From Klebsormidium nitens (taxonomy: Eukaryota > Plantae > Klebsormidiophyceae): a stretch of DNA of 64,000 nt. Below the pieces are notes generated by a model. That model was not told the origin of the DNA, searched no databases, and saw nothing but the letters and a program-made list of their open reading frames with translations. Below are positions 24,911 through 46,952 of this stretch, piece by piece (position 1 is the stretch's first letter; each line of letters begins with the position of its first letter). The stretch spans positions 70,995 to 134,994 of the forward strand of contig DF237176.1 in NCBI GenBank assembly GCA_000708835.1. The letters run 5' to 3'. The position numbers and the translations under genes were made by a program.

Positions 24911-27900
24911 ATGGCGATCCTGATGGCTGAGGAACCGGAGGCGCAGTCTGCGGTGCCTCCGGAGGCCAATGGCTGTGTCAAGCCTGACGTCACTAAGGGT
25001 GTCAGCGGGAGCAAGGTGGTCTCATTTGGCATGGCTGCCCCCGTGGAGTCTCTGATGGAGAAGAACCTTAAGAAGGGCAAGGCACTGTCCCTGGCTGAGA
25101 AGGAAGCCAAGAGCTTCGCCAGCCTGAATGAAGTGCTCTATGATCTGTCTCTGCCGCCGCTGATTGACAACACGGCGAGGCCGAAGAGTGTTCCCAAGGA
25201 TACTGTGACGGTGGTTATGCTGACCGAGCCGGAGAACCGGGTTTCGGTGTGCATGGAGGGGGCCAAGCAAAGCAGGTGAGGGGTCAAGTGCAAGTAATCC
25301 CAAGCTTGGATCGATTCTGTCAAATTGTGACTTTTTCGTTTCATTTAGGTACCAAGAGGATTGAGACCGATAAACCATGCTGATTGATATGGGCCACAGA
25401 AGGGTATATGAAGAGCGCCTTTTGTGTATCAACAGATTGGCGAAGGCTTGCAAAGCAGGCCCCTGAATAAATCTAGAAGATGGACATTCTCATTCTTGGA
25501 GCGGTGGATCCGCTGGGTTTGCAATTGGAGGGCCTTGTTCTTTAGATAATAATTGCAAATGTTTGATCATTTTCCAAGGCAACTGGACTAGGAGGTGTCT
25601 GTGCACAGGTGTGAAGAGATGGAACGAAACTGGCAGGCATTGTCCCCCTTGCTGCAGTGCAAGGAATTTGTCTCAGGACGCACGAGCCTCTGATTAGACT
25701 GCAGCTACTTACCTAGGATCTTGTTTTCTGGGGATAATACTTACCATCAAGGAGCAATTTTGACCTACATAAAAGCTAGCCCTGATACTCTCCTGTGAAA
25801 GGGTGTCTGGTGCTTGCACCTGGCCCTTCGAGGACCGCTTTGGAAGCAGCTTTACCCACACAAACAGCAATGAGCACCTGCAGTGGAGTATAACGGCTTT
25901 CAAACCTCTCACGAGAGGTTTGCCGGCTCCTGCTGCTCTACTGCGAAGTGTAGAAGCGGTTCACAATACGAAGTGAAGGAACGGCTTAGTATGGACAGGT
26001 GTCATCATATGCAAAACAGATATTCACCTTGAGCAACTCTCTCCATAGCTTCTACGTGCCTTTCCGGAAGCGCAGTCTCTGCGTAGCTGCAAGCCCACTT
26101 ATCTAAATCCCCTTTCTTAGCTGACGTCATCCCTTTCTCCCCCACAGGGGCAACGTCCTGATGGTGATCAACCCCGCCTGGCTGGAGAAGCGCCCCATCG
26201 TGACGTCAGACGTTAACGTCACCCCTCCAGCTGGCGCCACACACTCGCTGTTCGTGCACAAGGCCGTGTGGTTCGATACCAACGGGCAGGCGTACCTGGA
26301 CCGGTACGAACCCCCGAGGAAGGTCACGTACCTCGCCAACTTCTTCACGCTGCCTGGTGAGCTGCCGTCGGCAGAGAAACCTCAAGCAGGATATTGACAG
26401 CTGTCCAGAGACGTTGGCAAGGTTTGGAAGAGCTCAGCTGACTACTTCAACAGCTGTTCCCTGATTATTCTCACGCAAACCGTTCTGTTTCTCACACCTG
26501 TTTAGAACTCTTCTCTCTCGAATCTTAACCCACAATCTAGCCAAACCCTCTTTCAGACCCCTCTTTACCTCCTGCAGACCCCCTCTCAAAAGCTTCCTAA
26601 TTTCGCCACAGAACCTTCTTCAAAGACCCAGCCAGCTGCGAATCTAGACCTTCTCAGAAAAACATCCCTTGAACTCTTCCAACAGTTTTCCTCATATCTG
26701 CCTTACAACTCTCCCCTCAAACTCCAACAAAATCCCTCATCAAATCGTCTTCAAAACTCCTGCCAATTGGTACTCAATCGATCTTCAAACCTCCCTTAAA
26801 CCTCGCCCCCCAGGCTCGGAGGGCGACCGCGACGACGGCGTGCCGCTCGAGGCCGGCCTGGACTGCCCCATGAGCTCCTCGTCGGCCCTCGAAAAGATCA
26901 CTAACGACAAGCTGCACACGCGCCTGCTCCTCTCGCGCGCGCGCGTGGCGCACCCCCAGTGCGTCGCCTTCACCTTCAAGTGCCCCATGGTCTACAACAC
27001 CTCCGGTGAGCCGCCGCGCTTCAGAACCCGTCTTCAGAACTTCGTGAAAAACTCCCCGCAGTGTCTCTCGTGCTCAACTCTTCTTCCTGCGATTTCTTTC
27101 TCGGAGGTCTCAGTTTTGTAAACAATGCATGCAGATGCTTGGCAGATTGATGGGCAAGGGCCGAACACGAAAGCAAGGTGCTCACGACGAGCAGTCCCTT
27201 TACCAAATGAGGTCTGTCGGATGAAGGCAAGTAGGGAAGTGAAATTCCCCCCAATCGAAGTCACCTGACTTCGTTCCTGCGCCCTTCTTCCCCAGCAACT
27301 ATCGAGAAGAAGGTCAGCTGGAGCGTCTTTCTTTGTCCCCCCTTTTCCTCACCTTGCCAGAACGCCCTCCGCTTACCCATACGCTATCCCCTCGCCACAG
27401 GCTGCACCGGCACATACGCCGTCCACTCCCTGTCCGACCGCGCCGGCTACGAGGACCTCTTCCGGCGTGAGGCGGAGCGGTTATGCGCGCGGTTAGCGCG
27501 TGACCAGGTGGTGGTTAAGCCGAGCGGGCCCATGTGGATGGGCAGCAACGGGGTGTCGTTTTGGAGCCGGAAAGACGTCGACGGAATCGTGGGCGCCGCG
27601 ACGGCGCTGCTCCAGCGGCTGTGGGACGGCGACGCGATTTTGCTGGAGGAGTTCCTGCCGACGCTCGGCCCGCACGACATCAAGCACGGCAGCGACGTGA
27701 GCTTCCAGACCTTGACATACTTCAGAGATGGGTTCAGTGTTCCCTATCCATATGTCGATGTAGTGATCTCTTGATCGTTGCGGTTGAAAGATTCAGGTTT
27801 TTAGGGGCTGAGTGCCGGCTTGCTGAAATTGGGGCCGCATCAAATCACGTTTGAGAGCGTTACGCCAACATCGTCGAAGCGTGGACAGGATTGGAGCCAC

Positions 27901-30900
27901 CCAGGAAATTTCTTTCCCCCCTCTTCTTATCTTGGATCGATCGGAAATGAATCATATGACTTCTGACCCCTTCCCTTCTGATATGCGCAGGTGATGTCAC
28001 CCACACACGCGGCGCTGGAGGTCGGGGCGGTCGCCGGGAACCCGTTCGCGGAGAACATTGTGCCGCGCTTCGACGACTCGGACCTCTCGGAGGGCGACGA
28101 CGAGGCGGAGCAGGAAGAGGCGCTCAAGAACTGGAAGGTCGCCCCGCAGGCCATTGCCGGTGAGGATTTCGAGCGCTGCGGTTTGTGTTGTTTCGAAAGA
28201 CTGCGAGATTGCCTTCACGCCTTGCAGAGAAAAATTTGCGAAGCTAGCGGAAATGTGTTGATTCTTTGATTCTCCTCAGAGTCGAGTACGTCCTTGGCTA
28301 AGCAGCTGGTTCTCGTACTACCCTTCGGCTTTAACAACCAAACCGCGGTTATGTGACCCAACATGTGGTTCGTTTCACGAGCATAAAAGTAAGCCAAGAA
28401 GCGGGGCTCCTGAGACCCCCGGAACTATGAACGTAATCCGAATCCTAACCAAGGGACACTGGTAGCCGACAAACTTCTGCTTAAGACCAACCCACCACAA
28501 ACCCTCGTTTCCAATCATTAAGCAGGCCAGAATTTCTGGGTTTCCGTCTGCGCGTCATGGTGGCACGTGCCCCCTGGGGCGAGCCTTTGGTAACCATCTT
28601 TTTGACACTAACTCGCTCTAAAGTAACCCGCCACAAACCCTTTCTTCCCAGGCATCAAGCAGGCCAAGAAGCTGGGTTTCCGGCTGCGCGTCATGGTGGC
28701 TCGTGCCCCCTGGGGCGAGCCGGTGGTGACGAAGATGGTGGCGGGCATCGGACGGCTGAGCGCGCCCATCAACGGCTCAAACACGATCCCGATCAGCTTC
28801 GACGCCGTGCTGGAGCAGTGGGGGATCGTGACGGTGGAAGGGAAGCGGAAGGTCACGGATACGATATCGAACGAGGCGGGCCGGGTTATGAAGGTGGGTT
28901 CGGTCGATCCTGCAATTTGCAGGTAGTTAAGCCGTACACATTGAAGCTGTGAATGCTGCTTGGACGAATGTTTAGCGTTGTCAAGATGAACTAGGTGATT
29001 TCAAGTTTAGGGGCCCACTCTTGTGCAAGGGAAAGCAGCCAAAGTCGTAGCGTAATCGCACTGAAAGAGTTGACAGATCTGGTCGGATAGTCGGTAAGGA
29101 TTGGGAAGAGCTGGGCACGCTTTCTAAGCGGTAACAACAATTTGTGTGAAACCGAATGACTCTTCAAAAGTGCTGTACAGTTCTTTCTTTGCTTCTCAAA
29201 GAGTGAAACAAGCCGCACTGCAGAGAAACAAAGTTCAGGAGCATTCCTACCGCGCCGATTGACTTTCACTTTTGTTTTCAACCGGATCAATATTCGATAT
29301 GCGCAGGCAATCATGGACTACGAGGCTGGGATGCCGATCGAGGAGCGCGGCGGCGCCAACTGCCAGACGGACCTCATCGGAATCGACTTCATCGTTACGC
29401 CTACCGGAACCGGAATCATGCCGTACGTCATTGAGGTGAGGAGTGACTTCAGCTTTTAGATTCTTTCCTGTTGGAAGACCTTCATTGGCCTTCATAAGTC
29501 AGCGTAAGCTTGATGAAGCGGATTCTCATAACGAAGCGGCTTTGATTGGCTCGTCCTTGCCATGATGCTTTTAGAACACGCAAAGTCTTTGGAGAAGCGC
29601 ACCTCACAAGAATCACTTTCGTGAAGAGACAAGGTTTGAAGACTTGGGCTTCGAGTCCTCGGGCTTCAATCTGTACAAGCTCAGCCAAAACCGACCGCTC
29701 AACCCCTATGCCTGTGACGTCAGATTTTTTAGCCCCAAGCCCCAAGCTCGAAATGCTAAAACGCGCGCCCGCCCTCCCCGCAGGTGAACGACCACGACTG
29801 CAGCCTGCAGGCGCAGCAGCTGGAGTGCCTGCTGCCGGAGACGCGCTTCGAGAGCGTGCGCTGGTGGGTCGCCACCATGATCTCCCGGTCCGAGACGTAC
29901 CTGCTGGGCGGCCGGCGCATTTTAGTGGTCGGGGCAGGTGAGCCGCGGCGACCAGATCGGATTGTGAAAAATGGTATTTCGACGGTTGTCGGGAAGGTCG
30001 TTCGGGAATAAGCTAGGAAGTATGGCCCGACTGTACGGGCAGCGCAAAGGTGAGGCCGTCAGCGTCGCGAGAGAGGAGGTATCAAGTTTTGCCAGCTTTC
30101 AGATATTTGAACAGGCAACCTGCTTAGGTGATTAACACTCGTGTTCGGTCGACACATGATTCTGTCGAGGCTATTGTCAAAGAATGCGTGCATCACTGTA
30201 GCATTGCGGGTGCGAAAAATCTCAACGTAGAGCATACGTCTCACTCTTTTCTTTCACCGGGCTGAAACACGCTGCAAGAATGGCACGAGTAGTGGAGTGA
30301 TCTAAAATTGGTCGTCGCGCGCTCGCAAGTTTTGCAACTCGCTTCAAATTTCAATCTCTTGTTTCAGGGGGGTGGAGCAAGCGATGGGTGTGGGGGGGGT
30401 CCCGCAAGCTGGGCGTGCAGTGGTACTGGTGAAACATTTGACAAGCACTCTGCGCGCGCGCTCAAAAGCTCTGAAGAAACTGCAAGTCTCAAATGTATCC
30501 ACGTTTTCTTTTCAGGGGGGTGGAGCAAGCGGTGGGTTTGGGAGGGGTCCCGCAAGCTGGGCGTGCAGGTGGTGCTGGTGGAGGAGTTCGACACGCACTT
30601 CGCGCGCGACCTTGCTGACGTCTTCATCGCCTTCCCGGGGCTCAGCGACCACACGCGCGACGAGGAGCACGCGCGCAGAATCGTGGGCGCGCTCAAGGTG
30701 AGCGCGTTTGGGGTCAGAAAATAGGATTATGAGAGGAATTTCAAGGGTTTTGGGAGCGTCTTTTTGGATTCGCGTCTTGACGGGGCTGAGCAACCACACG
30801 CGCGACGAGGAGCACGCGCGCCGAGAATCGTGGGCGCGCTCAAGGTGAGACGCGGACGCGCGCGCGGCGTCGCACTCTGGTAGTTATGCAAAGGTTTTCG

Positions 30901-33900
30901 ATGCGCTTTTGCAGGCGCGAGCAGTATCGCGGCCGCGCTCATGGTGATGCGCGCGCAAAGTTTTGGGTCAGGTTTAAGGTTAAGTTACGTTTTTGATAAG
31001 GTTACGAAAGGCTTGTGGGTGCGCTTTTGACCACACGCGGGACGAGGAGCACCCGCGCAGGATCGTGGGCGCGCTCAACGTGAGGCGCGCTACAAAAGTC
31101 CAGGGAGTTTGCGTTTAGATGATAGGATTCTGACAAGTTGATGGTCGGGCGAGACTGGCTGCAGTTACGGCCTTCGACGGCTTTGAACAGTTCGGGGAAA
31201 GGGCTAAAGATTTTCTCGACTTCTGCGGCAACGTGTCGGCGAGCTTCAGGAAGACAGAGAAGGGTTTATCAAAGTAGGCTGGAGAATTGTGGAGGATACG
31301 TTTCAATGGACGCAGATGTAAGGTTTTACTAGCCCAATTCTGTCATATACTGCCTTTCTGTCAGTCTAACCTGCTTTCAGCCACCTTTCAGCCTGAACGT
31401 CTGCACAGAAGTATGGCGACGTCAGCCTTTGTGAACCGCCTAACGTTCGCTGAATGAATCTCGTTCCGTTCCTTCCTCGCAGGAGCGGCAAATCACCGTC
31501 GAGGGGTGCCTGACCTTCTGGGAGGACTGCGGCCCGCTGGCGAGCCTGGTGACCAATCTCTTGGGGACACGTGGCAACAGCTTCTTGGCGCAGAGCCTGG
31601 CCAAGTCCAAGTTCCGGACGCAGGACACGCTCATGAAGGACAACCGGGAGTACCAGCACAAGCCCACCACGTCGTTCTTCGCGTCGAAAGTGAGCGCCTC
31701 AGAGTCGCTGTATGGATCTTCGACACGCAAGCCAGTGTTGGTCTCTTCCTGTCTCAACTTTCCAGTATCCTATTTCAGAAGCAGTGTTGTTGCGTGTTGA
31801 AGGCAATCATGGGCGAGATACTCGAAAGGTACAAGTCGACCGATGACACTAAAACTAAATCTCGAAACTAAATCTCGAGCGCGCATGGAATCCATCCTCA
31901 CTCACTCATCAGCATCTGGAGGAAGTTCAAATCTCAAACAACCCATGAGGGAATCTTATGCTTTCATATAATTCACGGCTTTTAATCTGGGACGCTCAAC
32001 TCCTCTTTGCAGGCGTACAGATTACAATCCGAGGCAGATCTAGAGCGCGCGTGGGAGGACCTGGGGGGCATGCCGGCTGTGCTGAAGCTCGAGTACGGCT
32101 CTTCTGCGTGCGGCGTCGTTTTGGTGGCCACGAAAGAGGACGCGCTCGCAAAGTTCCGGCAGATCCGGTCGGAGCTCAGCAGCGAAGGGGATCACGGCGG
32201 CGTCGGGCTGGGCTTCGGGTAAGGATCAATAGACCTGAAGTTTGATTTCGTTCGCGTCTCTCCTCTTTACTCTGCGCAATCAACCTCAACTGTCTCGTTC
32301 GATTCCCTTTGTGTTTGCTTTTACTGAAACTTGGAGCTCAGCAGAAGGTAAACAAGGCGGCGTCGGGCTGGGCCTCGGGTAAGAGCAAATGTCTCTGCCT
32401 TTTTTCCAATTTTGCCTGATTTTTGGGTCGTTTTTGAAGTTCCTTCCTTTCATCTCTTGTTCTTTCTTTGCTTCTCCGAGCTCAGCAGCGAAGGGGACCA
32501 CGGCGGCTTCGGGCTGGGCTTCGGGTGAGAAGCTGAATCCACCTGTTTCCTGCTATTTTATGTTCCCCCTCTTCCGTTCTTTCTAGCTTCTATTGTCTCG
32601 AATCTACTTCGGCTGTTTTGTGCAACTCTTAGAGAAGGGTTTACATGATTCACGGCGGCGTCGAGCTAGCATTGTCTCGAAGTGTTATGTATTTGTAGGA
32701 AGATCGCGAGGAACTCGCAACGTAGATTGGCTGCCGTTCAGATCTACCTTGGCTCGACTGATTCCCTGAAACCTCCAAGATGCTAAATAAAAGAATTCGC
32801 TCAATTCTTGTCCCCTTCTTCATTTCTTTGTCGCCACCGCAGAAGTCCGAACAAAGTCGCGCTCAATCCTTCCGACCTTGGTTGCACGATCCTTTACCCC
32901 CGTTGGTCTCCCTTAAACGGCACTGAACCCGCTGAATTTCTTCCTAAACCCCTCGCTAACCCTCATTCCGCAGGTCGTCTCTCGTGTTGATGGAGTTCAT
33001 CGAGGGCAGCGAGCATGACGTGGACATCGTCATGTATGACGGCCAGACTGTGGCCGCTTTCGTCACCGACAATGGGCCCACCCGCATGCCCTACTTCAGT
33101 GAAACCGCTGCCGCCATGCCCAGCCGGCTGCATCGGTAAGCGGATTTTGTAAGCAACGTTTCAGGGGTTGAATAAACCCGATGCCAGGGCTTAGAGTTTG
33201 ACCCGTTGCAAAGCGTAACTACTTTTAAATGCGCCCACCGGTAGCTTGGGCACGTCTCAAGCTTACCAAGGAGATAGTGGATGATGGTTCCAATCCCAGC
33301 ACCCTCATGAGCTCTTCTTGCACCCAATCAATTTAAGATTAGTGCGAGCGTCTGGCTCTCAGATATCGAGGTCAAAGAAAAGAGTCTTTCTTCTTGCTCA
33401 TGTCGCCATGAAATTTTTGCTCAAAGTTCTGGAGATCTTGCAAGTGTGACTATACAATGCTCCGAGTTCCGGAGATTTCCTTGTCGGTAATCTCCTTTTA
33501 TTCCTTTGCTTATTTCGCAGTGATTAGTCGAGACTTCCTTACCCTAGTTCTCGCTTCTCGCTCCAGGGACAAGCAGATGGTAATGGTTGCCGCGGCCGCG
33601 CAGTGCTGCGCGTGTCTGGGTCTGCAGAACGGCGTCTTCAACGTCGAGTTCAAAATGACGGGCATGGGGCCCAAGCTCATCGAGATCAACGGCCGCCAGG
33701 GGGGCTTCTATATCCAGGTAAAGCAACCCCCCCCCTGAGCTAAAAAAGGTGCAGAACCCAATACACCGCACTCTGCCCTGAGAAGACCGTTTGGGTCAGC
33801 GGGCGCCTTGAAGCCGGGGGGCTTGGATTGGTTACAAGTTCAAAGCGCAAAGTCAAGTTTTGTTGGTTTTGGCTCGAGATCCCCGACAGTCCATCATCTT

Positions 33901-34793
33901 CGCGTATTGCAATTAGGTGTATCCCGAAGATTGACCTGTCTTCTACGCCTTTGTAATGAGGTTACTCTGCCCATTCGACCTAACCCCTCCTATCCCATCT
34001 TCTCTTCTCTTTCAGGACTGGATTGAGCGGGTTTGGGGCGTTAACCTGCTGAAAGCGAACATTCTCGTCGCACTCGGCGTGCGGCCGTCCGTCTTCCCGG
34101 CGCCCAAACCGCGGACCCACATTGTCGGCCGGATGATCTACAGCTCCGTGTGCTCGGTAAGTTCCCCCGGGCCCTTTACTCGCCCTTTCACAGACTGCTT
34201 CTTGTGCCCGCTTTATTGATGTGCAGGGTACACTGTGTGCTTGTTTGGGAATCACGCGGGGAAAAATCACGCTCACTATTGTGCCCCAACGTCGGAAAGT
34301 ACCGTTTGGCGGAGCCTCATTGATGAACGAGATGAGTCGCCTCGAGCTTTGCACTTCCACCTTACATATCATACAACCGGCTTCGGAGAACTTTTTCCCT
34401 GCTTTATTGAGCAATCTGCAATAGGAGACTTTGAAGGTTGTGGTGAGCTCTGTTCCAATCGTAAGTATCTCCACTAGCATCGTCTGTGACTTGGCCAAAT
34501 GAACAGCCCCCGCGACTCGTTTTCGATACGACATCTCTTCCCCGCAGAACGCCCTCAAGACGACGTGCACCGTCGAACGCCTGCACGAGCTGCACAACCA
34601 GGGCGTCATCGTTCTGAACCAGTTCGAGCCGACGGTTCCGGAGGTCGAAGAGTTCGAAGAACCATTCGCGAGCGTGGGAATAAAGAGCGCGAGCAAGGCG
34701 GGCGCAAAGCAGCAGCTTCAGGCGCTCTGGAGCATTTTGGGTTTGGAGGATAAGGACCCCAAACCCTGCGGCTGGTATCTGAAAAACCTGTAA
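24911..34793 (+). CDS. CARNS1: Carnosine synthase 1-like protein with two ATP-grasp domains (1016 aa, 15 exons)
   Basis: Exons 24911-25275, 26148-26356, 26814-27005, 27401-27696, 27991-28159, 28652-28893, 29307-29435, 29784-29937, 30516-30697, 31483-31689, 32013-32218, 32974-33135, 33567-33717, 34016-34156, 34548-34793. All introns are GT-AG and phase-consistent; total 3051 nt. Motifs PPRKVTY, LDCPMSSS, ERGGANCQTDLIGIDF, RRILVVGAGG, LSDHTRDEEHARR, GCLTFWEDC, VLKLEYGSSACGV, DHGGVGLGFG, LMEFIEGSEHDVD, DNGPTRMPYFSETAAAMP, GVFNVEFKMTGMGPKLIEINGRQGGFY and EEPFASV follow the order I recall for vertebrate CARNS1. Confidence 0.92.
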
Positions 34794-44281: not shown

Positions 44282-46952
44282 TCAATCCAAAGGGACCACG
44301 GCCGCCGCCGGCAACCGCTCGACCGTCGCAATGTACGCCCCGTCCTCCTCAGGTCCTTCCCCCAATTGTGCCGTCAGATCGATCGTCACCTTCTCCCTCG
44401 GGCCTGTCGGTCTTTTCCGCTTCTCGGTGAAAATACCCTCCCGCTCCGCTGCTCGTTTCTTCAAGCTCGACAAACTGAGGGGCGCCCGTCCTTCTCGGCA
44501 GGCAGCCGCCAGCGCCCCCCGGGTGCGGTTGACCACCGGGCCGGAAGCAAGAGCGGCGTAGTCATCATATTCTGCATCACCCCGGGAGGTTTGACACTCC
44601 CGGTCAGCTCCACTGGAGGGGTGATTACCGTTTTCAAAGCGCGGTGCCAATGCAGGTATCCGGTGCCCTTCCGAAGCGGCACCGGTCGTCTGATCAGGCA
44701 TTTGTACGAAGCTTAAAAGCCCCGTTCCGCTTTGGACGGGCTCAAGGGTGGTGTGAACAGGCGCCTCGTGGGCAGATCGTCCGAGGGATCCCCCTCGACC
44801 GAGTCCATTTACACCAGGCAGCCCGTCACTAGCAACATCATGATCGGCTGCAATCCCATTCTCAATCGTATCTGTTCCCATAAGTTGCCCCCCGACAAAC
44901 TCTCGCCCTCTCTGGACTTCGTTCCCCGGAGCCGAAACGACCTCCAAATTGTCACCTGGCAGGGGGTCCGATAGCTCAGCCCCGTGGACCCCCCGTTGCG
45001 AGTCCAGCCTCCCCGCAAACAAGTTTCTCCGTTCAGGGGGTCCCAACGACGTGCTCGCAGCTGCCACCCCCGACAAGGATGCGCCGTTCCCAAGGTGTCT
45101 GTAATTCTGAGAGGGAGTGGTGGGAGCATACATGGGGCCTGCTTCTGGGACCGTTTTCTGGAGGCGGAACTTCGCCTGAGCCGACTCGTAGATCGCTTTA
45201 TGGGAAGGGTTGTCGAGGTTCAGAATTTCGCGCAGTCTGAGGACGTCGGCCGTCTCAAACCTGGGAGGAAGAAGGAAACAACTTTTTGTCGAATCAAAGC
45301 GTGTGAGACTGGGTGCCGTCAAGAAAACGTCTTACCGCAGCCGCCGGAATGAGTCGTATAAGTCCGCAAGGGATCAGAAAAGTCTGAGATGCGTGCAAAA
45401 AGCTAGTGTTTCCACCCTCCTTTTATGCCTGCACAGTTTCAAAAGTTGATGACTGCAGCAGAAGCAGGTGCAACTGGAAAATCAGAACTTTGGGAGCTGA
45501 GAAATGGTCAAAAAAGCAGTTTTTAAGACACCAGCAAGGTTGACTTCTGTCTAGTCTAGCCTTCTAACTCGAGCACAAACAACCACCTTTTCTATCCTAC
45601 TTGCAGATAGTTCGAGACGCCCAAGCAGAACCAGCTGTACGCACCAATCTGCCAGGTCGTGTTTCAGTCTACGGAATACGTGGACTGCCTTTGTCTATAA
45701 TCTTCTTATGTCTGTAGGACTTTAAACCGTCTTTGTCTATAGAATACTTAGACTGTCAACCTGCTTCTCTCAGCTCACAAAGTTACCAGCTTGCATGAAG
45801 ATTACAATAGCCAAGAGAGTCCAGCGGATCTGAAAGAATCGAACTAGAGTGAAACCAGGGACAGCAGAGAGAGCGATGAATCCCACCTACAAAAGAGGTC
45901 CACTGTCTCGTACTTCCTCCGGACCGCAGCCTTTTGAGTGGCAGATGCCTTCGGCCCCTTGCTGCGCGTCAACTCTCCCTCCCCCGCCCGCAAGCTCGGC
46001 TTCATAAAGTGCTTCACATCTTCCGCTTCCAACACCAATCCCTCCCCCNNNNNNNNNNNNNNNNNNNNNNNNNNNNNNNNNNNNNNNNNNNNNNNNNNNN
46101 NNNNNNNNNNNNNNNNNNNNNNNNNNNNNNNNNNNNNNNNNNNNNNNNNNNNNNNNNNNNNNNNNNNNNNNNNNNNNNNNNNNNNNNNNNNNNNNNNNNN
46201 NNNNNNNNNNNNNNNNNNNNNNNNNNNNNNNNNNNNNNNNNNNNNNNNNNNNNNNNNNNNNNNNNNNNNNNNNNNNNNNNNNNNNNNNNNNNNNNNNNNN
46301 NNNNNNNNNNNNNNNNNNNNNNNNNNNNNNNNNNNNNNNNNNNNNNNNNNNNNNNNNNNNNNNNNNNNNNNNNNNNNNNNNNNNNNNNNNNNNNNNNNNN
46401 NNNNNNNNNNNNNACGCCCTTTGATTGCCCCCCCTGAGAGCTCTCTTCTTCGGCCCCCCCCTTGCCGGAGCCTGATTCTGGCCCCCCTAAAGGGCCAAGA
46501 GACCACCCCCCGACCTCCCTAAAGCGCACTACAATTGTCCCCATTTCAGAATCGGCAAAAGGCAGCACGCGCGTGCCTGGTTCGTTTCTGTGCCGAGTTT
46601 CCGGCACCGCGAATGTGAATAGGCTCTTGTGGTGGTCCCCGTGCGCCTTCCCCCTGAAACACACGCTCTCGCTGGCCCCTTCCTCAACCCCTGAGATGTT
46701 ATCCGCAACGTAGCAGAGCTTAGTGTACCCGACAGACTGGCCGTCTACTTTGGCAAAGACTTTGAACTGGGGCTTGTTGGGGCGGGCTAGCGACGACGAG
46801 TTGCGGAAACGCACGCGTGCTCGGATGCGAAAGACCTCCCCTGGGTGGCCAATGATGTATGTTGTTCCCTGGTGTTGGATTTTGGGTAGTGGTTGATTCG
46901 CAGCATCCAGAAGCTCAGCGGAGTAGACCAGCTGCTGGGAGATGGTCTGCAT
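44282..46952 (-). CDS. Uncharacterised DUF7918-like protein, paralogue A (spans an assembly gap)
   Basis: 46952 ATG (MQTISQQLVYSAELLDAANQPLPKIQHQGTTYIIGHPGEVF...KVDGQSVGY...FTFAVP...MGTIVVRF), gap, then ...KHFMKPSLRAG...VDLFCR ending 45887 |gtggga; last exon 45260-44282 (FETADVLRLREIL...KRKRPTGPREKVTIDLT...). The phase-2 join matches paralogue B. Confidence 0.75.
46049..46413. other. Assembly gap (365 N)
   Basis: Run of N flanked by C-rich sequence that codes Gly/Ser/Glu-rich peptide on the minus strand. Confidence 1.

Follow-up and report, generated by a model that had tools for sequence, protein, structure and literature searches.

The locus at 24911-34793 of the window (the window being the whole 64,000-nucleotide stretch of contig DF237176.1 of the alga Klebsormidium nitens that was analysed) raises the question of whether a streptophyte alga carries a working carnosine synthase, and if so what such an enzyme would make. 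From the analyses described below, we consider it quite probable that the locus is a functional nuclear gene of K. nitens belonging to the CARNS1/ATPGD1 family, encoding a protein of about 1000 aa with two ATP-grasp modules. The reaction that this protein would catalyse is a separate matter, to which we return at the end.

An intact and transcribed gene of 15 exons

The sequence-only reading had proposed a full-length open reading frame of 1016 aa spread over 15 exons. Our gene model, rebuilt independently, gave a product of exactly 1016 aa with GT..AG at all 14 introns, and RNA contigs from four independent studies supported ten of the 14 junctions. From exon 4 through exon 12, all eight junctions are present as joints in RNA contigs (X5, X6, X11, X13), and junctions 3/4 and 12/13 were derived from loose-end letters of the RNA, which agree with exon 3 and exon 13 respectively. 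We find the gene intact and its splicing in line with the model, the remaining four junctions (1/2, 2/3, 13/14 and 14/15) being placed by profile-HMM scoring of canonical splice-site combinations only. It is also transcribed in many independent cultures. The gene and its exons are as follows.

24911-34793, + strand: CARNS1-family gene of K. nitens, 15 exons, stop included
24911..25275, + strand: exon 1 (aa 1-122); start ATG at 24911; homologues align by tblastn; donor by HMM score
26148..26356, + strand: exon 2 (aa 122-192); tblastn homologues; boundaries by HMM score only
26814..27005, + strand: exon 3 (aa 192-256); tblastn and HMM; 3' end set by RNA loose-end letters preceding exon 4
27401..27696, + strand: exon 4 (aa 256-354); RNA joint 27696/27991 in 4 runs; VVVKPSG (K295) and LLEEF
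27991..28159, + strand: exon 5 (aa 355-411); RNA joints on both sides in 4 runs; acidic, poorly conserved linker
28652..28893, + strand: exon 6 (aa 411-491); RNA joints; FRLRVMVAR
29307..29435, + strand: exon 7 (aa 492-534); RNA joints; N-half D518 and start of the VIEVNDH motif
29784..29937, + strand: exon 8 (aa 535-586); RNA joints; final part of the N half, with the connection to the C half
30516..30697, + strand: exon 9 (aa 586-646); joint 29937/30516 in X5, joint 30697/31483 in 4 runs
31483..31689, + strand: exon 10 (aa 647-715); RNA joints in 4 runs
32013..32218, + strand: exon 11 (aa 716-784); RNA joints in 4 runs; ATP-binding VLKLEYGSS (K740)
32974..33135, + strand: exon 12 (aa 784-838); joint 32218/32974 in 4 runs; 3' end from loose-end letters; MEFIEGSEHDVD
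33567..33717, + strand: exon 13 (aa 838-888); start from RNA loose-end letters; donor by HMM score; Pfam ATP-grasp matches; FNVEF (E865) and IEINGRQGG (E877, N879, R881)
34016..34156, + strand: exon 14 (aa 889-935); tblastn; boundaries by HMM score only
34548..34793, + strand: exon 15 (aa 936-1016); tblastn and HMM score; stop codon 34791-34793

In exon 14 an alternative donor at 34147 scored 7 bits below the chosen one. Loose-end letters of the RNA at 32513 and 33054 had no match in the window or in the paralogue locus. Every conserved exon aligns in order with homologues in tblastn searches, exons 1-8 aligning to their N halves. Homologues do not align to exon 5, and the matching region of the model of the Chlorokybus protein is a low-confidence loop (pLDDT <50).

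Four of the introns contain local copies of exon boundaries, all of them unused. A separate repeat search found these duplications, and Tandem Repeats Finder did not detect them.

28499..28594, + strand: copy of the exon 6 start, upstream of it in intron 5; repeat families D4 and D5
30362..30420, + strand: copy of the exon 9 acceptor and start, upstream of it in intron 8; repeat family D3; 95% identical
30794..31084, + strand: two copies of the exon 9 end with its GTGAG donor, in intron 9; repeat family D1
32329..32529, + strand: two copies of the exon 11 end and donor, in intron 11; repeat family D2

The copy in intron 5 belongs to a local tandem duplication whose unit measures about 137 bp; it has no RNA depth, and the homologue P0007 aligns to it as well as to the start of exon 6. 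The only junction observed at the acceptor of exon 9 uses 30516 and not the copy in intron 8, RNA depth is absent over 30750-31349, which covers the copies in intron 9, and the donor of exon 11 is used at 32218/32974 (4 runs) and not at the copies in intron 11. A low-depth RNA contig touches the third copy of the exon 11 end and then continues in unlike sequence.

Such duplications of exon boundaries could signal instability, and the locus might then be a decaying or non-functional copy, the real enzyme being the annotated paralogue on another scaffold (GAQ84768.1, DF237154.1, with a gene span of 11,655 bp), which carries the GenBank name "carnosine synthase [Klebsormidium nitens]". We regard this as highly improbable. 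The reading frame of the window gene is open and the duplicated pieces are unused in the mRNA contigs, and the comparison of the two copies points the other way, with 99 of 105 conserved positions matched by the window gene against 66 of 105 by GAQ84768.1, and branch lengths of 0.22 and 1.62 respectively. The motif losses also sit in the paralogue, whose N half lacks the VVKPS and E-x-N motifs and whose C half has an incomplete EHDVD motif. An annotation error in the N half of GAQ84768.1 could be part of the cause of its divergence. Both belong to the same family in the same genome and are sisters in the tree (100/99), but their C halves share only about 49% identity, and as judged from these residues and branch lengths the window gene is the conservative one of the two.

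Conservation and fold of the two halves

Database searches were done with exon 11 and with homologues as proxy queries for the spliced protein. The closest relative was found in Chlorokybus atmophyticus (Chrsp10S00051, EukProt EP00898_P003065), with 53% identity over 974 aa or 59% over aligned columns, followed by three protist transcripts at 44%. Identity to the CARNS1 proteins of a lizard (Zootoca) and a turtle (Caretta) was 36-37% over 957-960 aa (BLASTP, E = 0), and mollusc CARNS1-like proteins gave the same value over about 957 aa. In another comparison, 94 of 98 family-conserved columns were kept. Among positions at least 90% conserved in 21 animal sequences, the window gene keeps 54 of 70 in the N half and 85 of 102 in the C half (77-83%), and homologues from the bacterial group Elusimicrobia keep about 60%. 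These comparisons show that the predicted protein can be aligned collinearly with animal CARNS1 from end to end and that both halves retain almost every family-invariant residue. Like the animal enzyme (EC 6.3.2.11), it has two modules, a similar length, the same C-terminal ATP-grasp catalytic motifs and the same family-specific N-terminal module; it differs from it in the extra acidic linker of exon 5.

The catalytic motifs KLEYG, MEFIEGxEHDVD, FNVEF and EINxR had been described as intact from the letters, and all four were located in the C half: VLKLEYGSS at 738-746, MEFIEGSEHDVD at 790-801, FNVEF at 862-866 and IEINGRQGG at 876-884. Their putative ATP- and Mg-binding residues (the lysine of VLKLEYG, the acidic residues of MEFIEGxEHDVD, the glutamate of FNVEF, and E-x-N-x-R) match family-invariant columns. 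The C-half exons match Pfam ATP-grasp_4 and ATPgrasp_Ter weakly, as does exon 9, the pre-ATP-grasp (ATPgrasp_N-like) part of this half, with PF18130. Pfam, run on single exons and on N halves, gave no match in the N half. Exon 4 carries VVVKPSG, an N-half ATP-grasp motif. NCBIfam gave sub-threshold matches only, one exon used as query had no match in a PDB sequence search, and no solved CARNS1 structure was found by PDB sequence search.

The presence of two ATP-grasp halves, also claimed in the sequence-only reading, was borne out at the level of fold. Structure comparisons used AlphaFold models of the Chlorokybus orthologue, whose public gene model lacks one catalytic segment, in place of the K. 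nitens protein. The N half of that model matches DcsG, D-Ala-D-Ala ligases, VanA, synapsin, TTL and RimK. The C half is closest to the bacterial L-amino-acid ligases YwfE/BacD and BL00235 (PDB 3WNZ, 3VMM, 3VOT; E ~1e-17), which are also its best match by PDB sequence. The models thus support a predicted ATP-grasp fold for both halves of the window gene. L-amino-acid ligases are ATP-grasp enzymes that produce dipeptides through an acyl-phosphate. They share the fold of the C half but are single-module proteins with 14-18% identity to it, and the NCBIfam model AAntcapLigBacD scored 35-42 bits on the homologues against a cut-off of 850, so that the window protein is no member of the BacD/YwfE group and the likeness is one of fold only. 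Aligning the profiles of the two halves with hhalign returned nothing beyond the trivial overlap between the cuts, and so no detectable internal sequence homology. A profile of the N-half module (about 500 aa) found only CARNS1-like proteins in 5.8 billion clusters.

The public Chlorokybus model is longer than the window protein (1422 aa, with a 494-aa N-terminal extension), and it lacks the segment bearing the E-x-N-x-R motif, probably through a gene-model error.

Relatives, introns and ancestry

The enzyme had been described as one regarded as an animal enzyme in the first assessment of this locus, and this overstates the case. Full-length homologues were found in Chlorokybus, Euglena, Petalomonas, the diplonemid Lacrimia and Ancyromonas, and further members in a few unknown protists, giving a very patchy distribution; the K. 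nitens paralogue had already been named carnosine synthase. Two-domain relatives also occur in Elusimicrobia, with both modules in the same order and 28-33% identity, although these bacterial proteins often carry additional domains and reach about 1600 aa. Searches with exon 11 and homologue queries found no homologue in land plants or chlorophytes.

In a maximum-likelihood tree the window gene groups with GAQ84768.1, and the clade obtained when Chlorokybus is added is supported at 100/100. Animals form a separate clade (100/99), and the eukaryotic sequences are divided from Elusimicrobia, used as outgroup, at 100/100. The window gene thus lies inside the eukaryotic CARNS1-like clade, apart from the bacterial relatives. 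The algal sequences are not nested among those of animals, so "animal-type" can only mean a common family and not an animal origin. Intron positions were compared on a full realignment: nine are identical in position and phase to those of GAQ84768.1 and three more are near, and none of the 14 is shared with the CARNS1 genes of alligator and scallop.

These data bear directly on the possibility that the locus reflects contamination, a chimeric assembly or recent gene transfer from an animal, an idea suggested by the family being best known from animals, and one that the sequence-only reading had itself considered unlikely. The gene has 14 spliceosomal introns with GTGAGC-type donors, and RNA of four studies, labelled with two organism names, contains the same spliced form. 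The paralogue with common introns sits on a different scaffold of the K. nitens assembly, and Chlorokybus holds the nearest relative. Lists of open reading frames in the flanking DNA told nothing about the neighbouring genes. As the streptophyte clade is fully supported and separate from animals, contamination and recent animal transfer are excluded, and we give them a negligible probability.

The older history of the gene is less clear. Since the gene occurs in Chlorokybus as well as in Klebsormidium, it can be placed at the streptophyte base or close to it, and it would already have been present in the common ancestor of these two algae, with a DNA-level duplication later in the Klebsormidium line and, given its absence in land plants, a probable loss there. 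The streptophyte gene might instead have been acquired horizontally long ago, from another eukaryote or from a bacterium, and not inherited from an early eukaryotic ancestor. The patchy spread over animals, two classes of streptophyte algae, Euglenozoa, Ancyromonas and a few unknown protists is consistent with such an event, as are the lack of introns in common with animals and the bacterial clades interleaved in the tree of C halves; against it stands the gene's presence at or near the streptophyte base, and no donor lineage was identified. We see this as a plausible course of events, somewhat short of probable. A clade of bacterial single-domain proteins is interspersed with the eukaryotic C halves, so the trees do not establish vertical descent, and because they do not resolve the branching order between eukaryotic groups, even with the streptophyte and animal clades each well supported, the backbone favours neither vertical descent nor transfer.

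Predicted reaction and significance

By homology, the C-terminal module would use ATP to form an acyl-phosphate and would then join histidine, or some other basic amino acid, to a small one (beta-alanine or GABA, for example), releasing ADP and phosphate. The reaction of the animal enzyme likewise yields ADP and phosphate. The product might serve as a cytosolic buffer, a carbonyl quencher or a metal chelator. The N-terminal module keeps a lysine and a set of acidic and asparagine residues that resemble an active ATP-grasp site. Judged by homology, K. nitens may synthesize carnosine or related histidine dipeptides. The substrate and product predicted for streptophyte members are an extrapolation across about 36% identity.

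A different chemistry within the same family has to be weighed here, in which the enzyme accepts other substrates (another omega-amino or acidic acid with another amine), or in which both sites carry out two successive ligations, and the product is neither carnosine nor homocarnosine. Identity to the characterised type of vertebrate enzyme is modest, the streptophyte clade stands apart from animals, the full ATP-grasp-like residue set of the N half is kept throughout the family, and the gene context of the Elusimicrobia homologues holds no obvious beta-alanine or histidine genes and, with an adjoining M28 peptidase, gave no hint of function. Yet 83% of the near-invariant animal positions of the C half are kept, above the level of the bacterial relatives, and the animal enzyme itself reportedly takes several substrates. 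On balance we take a different chemistry to be a serious possibility, though not the likelier outcome, and we retain the carnosine-type reaction as the working prediction.

A more far-reaching view would make carnosine-type synthesis an old eukaryotic trait that persisted in the earliest-branching streptophyte algae, Chlorokybus and Klebsormidium, but disappeared before the origin of land plants. K. nitens would then accumulate histidine dipeptides, and the conserved N module would be another active site or an ATP sensor, which GAQ84768.1 would have lost on taking up a new function. Taken as a whole this is speculative and rather unlikely.

A carnosine-synthase-like gene has reportedly been studied before in the green alga Monoraphidium. 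With the family already recorded outside animals as well, the claim that can be made for this locus is smaller than the one first made for it, and given that homologues occur in further algae and in protists, and that a sister copy already bears the name, the finding, though solid, is only a moderate surprise. The window gene nonetheless deserves to be called carnosine synthase more than the divergent GAQ84768.1 does. If the predicted function is true, the gene would offer a distant and tractable orthologue for probing the role of the N-terminal ATP-grasp half of CARNS1. If carnosine-like dipeptides are indeed made, the plant lineage would gain its first example, and a stress-protection chemistry based on buffering and on the scavenging of carbonyls and metals would be counted among the traits of early streptophytes that land plants have lost.

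Structure and expression of the gene

ATP-grasp pieces could be recognised in stop-free stretches of the window's + strand from 24.9 to 34.8 kb, and ten long homologues align there as blocks in collinear order. Four different studies, filed under two organism labels, supplied RNA contigs that were placed on 27350-33340. Their eight GT..AG joints define exons 4 to 12, and the letters at their loose ends agree with the last bases of exon 3 and the first of exon 13. For the remaining four junctions, every canonical splice combination that kept the frame was scored against a profile built from 20 homologues, and the choice was made on these scores. The resulting model has 15 exons and encodes exactly 1016 amino acids, so that the structure proposed in the sequence-only reading was reproduced independently, and its proposed RNA check gave the joints of the central exons. 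The lengths of RNA contigs beyond 27350-33340 fit the outer exons and UTRs, a fit that does not prove the outer junctions.

A low-depth RNA contig of 217 nt from run X6 lies at 27720-27936, entirely within intron 4, and is a retained intron or unspliced precursor. About 70% of the words of the gene are present in runs X1-X4, which indicates that these runs contain intron sequence as well. RNA contigs from three runs match up to 32513, in a third copy of the end of exon 11, or from 33054 on; the approximately 255 letters that continue them are absent from the window and from the locus of the K. nitens paralogue, and these contigs may have been chimerically assembled or may stem from an unknown transcript. 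An assembly gap of 365 N (46049-46413), 11 kb downstream, leaves the gene unaffected.

Four exon boundaries are duplicated in the adjoining intron, in copies 69-95% identical and 136-235 bp away which carry an acceptor or a GTGAG/GTAAG donor.

Intronic copies of exon boundaries in the gene (+ strand, window positions)
28499-28594, +, copy of exon 6 start
30362-30420, +, copy of exon 9 start
30794-31084, +, copy of exon 9 end
32329-32529, +, copy of exon 11 end

The pattern resembles tandem duplication on a local scale, in units of about 140-160 bp that span splice junctions, and none of the copies is used in the mRNA contigs.

Conserved residues, fold and predicted reaction

The protein is 53% identical to that of Chlorokybus atmophyticus over 974 aa, about 44% identical to three protist transcripts, and 36-37% identical to reptile CARNS1 and mollusc CARNS1-like proteins over about 957 aa. 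Of the columns with 85% or higher conservation in 49 family members, it agrees at 94 of 98 or 99 of 105, depending on the count; among the agreeing columns are the lysine, the acidic residues and the E-x-N-x-R of the C-terminal ATP-grasp. Of the positions with 90% or higher conservation in 21 animal sequences, 77% are kept in its N half and 83% in its C half, as against about 60% in Elusimicrobia homologues. The gene is an intact, expressed family member with strongly conserved residues, and the CARNS1 homology first proposed from the sequence is borne out.

The N half occurs in the CARNS1 family only (profile search, 5.8 billion clusters), has no Pfam match, and shows no profile-level homology to the C half; the VVKPSG lysine, an Asp and the E-x-N in it are kept across the whole family. 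An AlphaFold model of the Chlorokybus orthologue, rather than of the window protein itself, is confident (pLDDT 88), and the best matches of its C half are the dipeptide-forming L-amino-acid ligases YwfE/BacD and BL00235. A separate N-half model (pLDDT 81) matches DcsG, D-Ala-D-Ala ligases, VanA, synapsin, TTL and RimK. By these matches of predicted models, both halves are ATP-grasp folds. The C-terminal module would join beta-alanine or GABA to a basic amino acid, histidine or another, in a ligation that forms ADP. The actual product is quite possibly carnosine or homocarnosine, at slightly under an even chance; that it is a related but different compound is a more tentative reading, though one to be taken seriously.

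Distribution and origin

In an exhaustive HMMER search of 1.84 billion representatives, exon 11 matched only 35 proteins, several of them 950-1050 aa long. Full-length homologues were found in animals (molluscs, a brachiopod, an echinoderm, vertebrates), in the streptophyte algae Klebsormidium and Chlorokybus, and in the protists Euglena longa, E. gracilis, Petalomonas, the diplonemid Lacrimia and Ancyromonas. Two-domain relatives are present in Elusimicrobia, and stand-alone proteins of about 450 aa resembling the C half are bacterial by gene context; those on contigs L010 and L012 are 37-44% identical to the eukaryotic C half. The description of the enzyme as specific to animals was therefore overstated. 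No embryophyte or chlorophyte protein was found in word-indexed searches of 5.8 billion clusters, which score only 8000 candidates each, or in the exhaustive search; part of the material searched was assembled from public RNA runs, where plants are heavily represented. Fakhri et al. 2024 reportedly describe a carnosine-synthase-like gene in the green alga Monoraphidium; no Monoraphidium protein was among the homologue matches.

The nearest non-streptophyte relatives, P0036 and P0037 (44% identity), are very AT-rich transcripts with GC3 of 18-24% (Logan contigs L001 and L003; runs SRR17973843, SRR17973836 and SRR29457753). The public model of the Chlorokybus protein (P0038, Chrsp10S00051) has 1422 aa with an unrelated N-terminal extension of 494 aa, omits the segment bearing the E-x-N-x-R motif, and is probably fused or mis-spliced.

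The maximum-likelihood tree joins the gene to GAQ84768.1, a second K. nitens protein, with support 100/99, and both to Chlorokybus with 100/100. Eukaryotes are split from the Elusimicrobia clade at 100/100, which upholds the eukaryotic CARNS1-like placement; the animals form their own clade (100/99), the streptophyte sequences fall outside it, and the backbone among eukaryotic groups lacks resolution. When a tree is built from the C half only, a bacterial single-domain clade sits among eukaryotic sequences, closer than the two-domain Elusimicrobia proteins, which hints at exchange between bacteria and eukaryotes. Alligator and scallop CARNS1 have three intron positions in common, and a comparison of positions found none common to the window gene and either of them. 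Taken together, tree, distribution and introns exclude contamination, already judged unlikely from the sequence, and also a recent animal-to-alga transfer. The gene is at least as old as the split between the Chlorokybus and Klebsormidium lineages; for its deeper history, vertical descent with many losses cannot be distinguished from old transfers.

The second K. nitens copy and the place of the gene in its family

The gene for GAQ84768.1 spans 11,655 bp on DF237154.1 and is taken as a paralogue. Nine intron positions and phases are identical in the two genes and three more are near; the duplication therefore took place in the DNA and postdates the introns. Its branch is much longer (1.62 versus 0.22); it agrees at 66 of 105 family-conserved positions, with 38 lost, and the VVKPS and E-x-N motifs of its N half are gone, as is part of EHDVD. 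Some of this divergence may be gene-model error; the protein may have taken on a new function, may be a pseudoenzyme, or may be modelled wrongly in part. The window gene is the conservative copy of the pair.

Our literature search found no link of carnosine synthase with streptophytes. Outside metazoans, human CARNS1 had its best match in Perkinsus marinus at 151 bits (Salzberg 2017, PMC5422933), so that strong algal and protist homologues had gone unnoticed in 2017. Metabolic-model papers have inferred the carnosine synthase reaction for some algae (PMC5988327; PMC10629481), and a 2026 diatom metabolomics study, which cites Fakhri et al., reported carnosine under high light (PMC12916786). GenBank already names GAQ84768.1 "carnosine synthase [Klebsormidium nitens]", and the novelty as originally framed was too strong. 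The window gene adds a well-supported new member to a known family; its lineage already has an annotated sister copy, and the biochemical question that it poses is genuine and readily tested.
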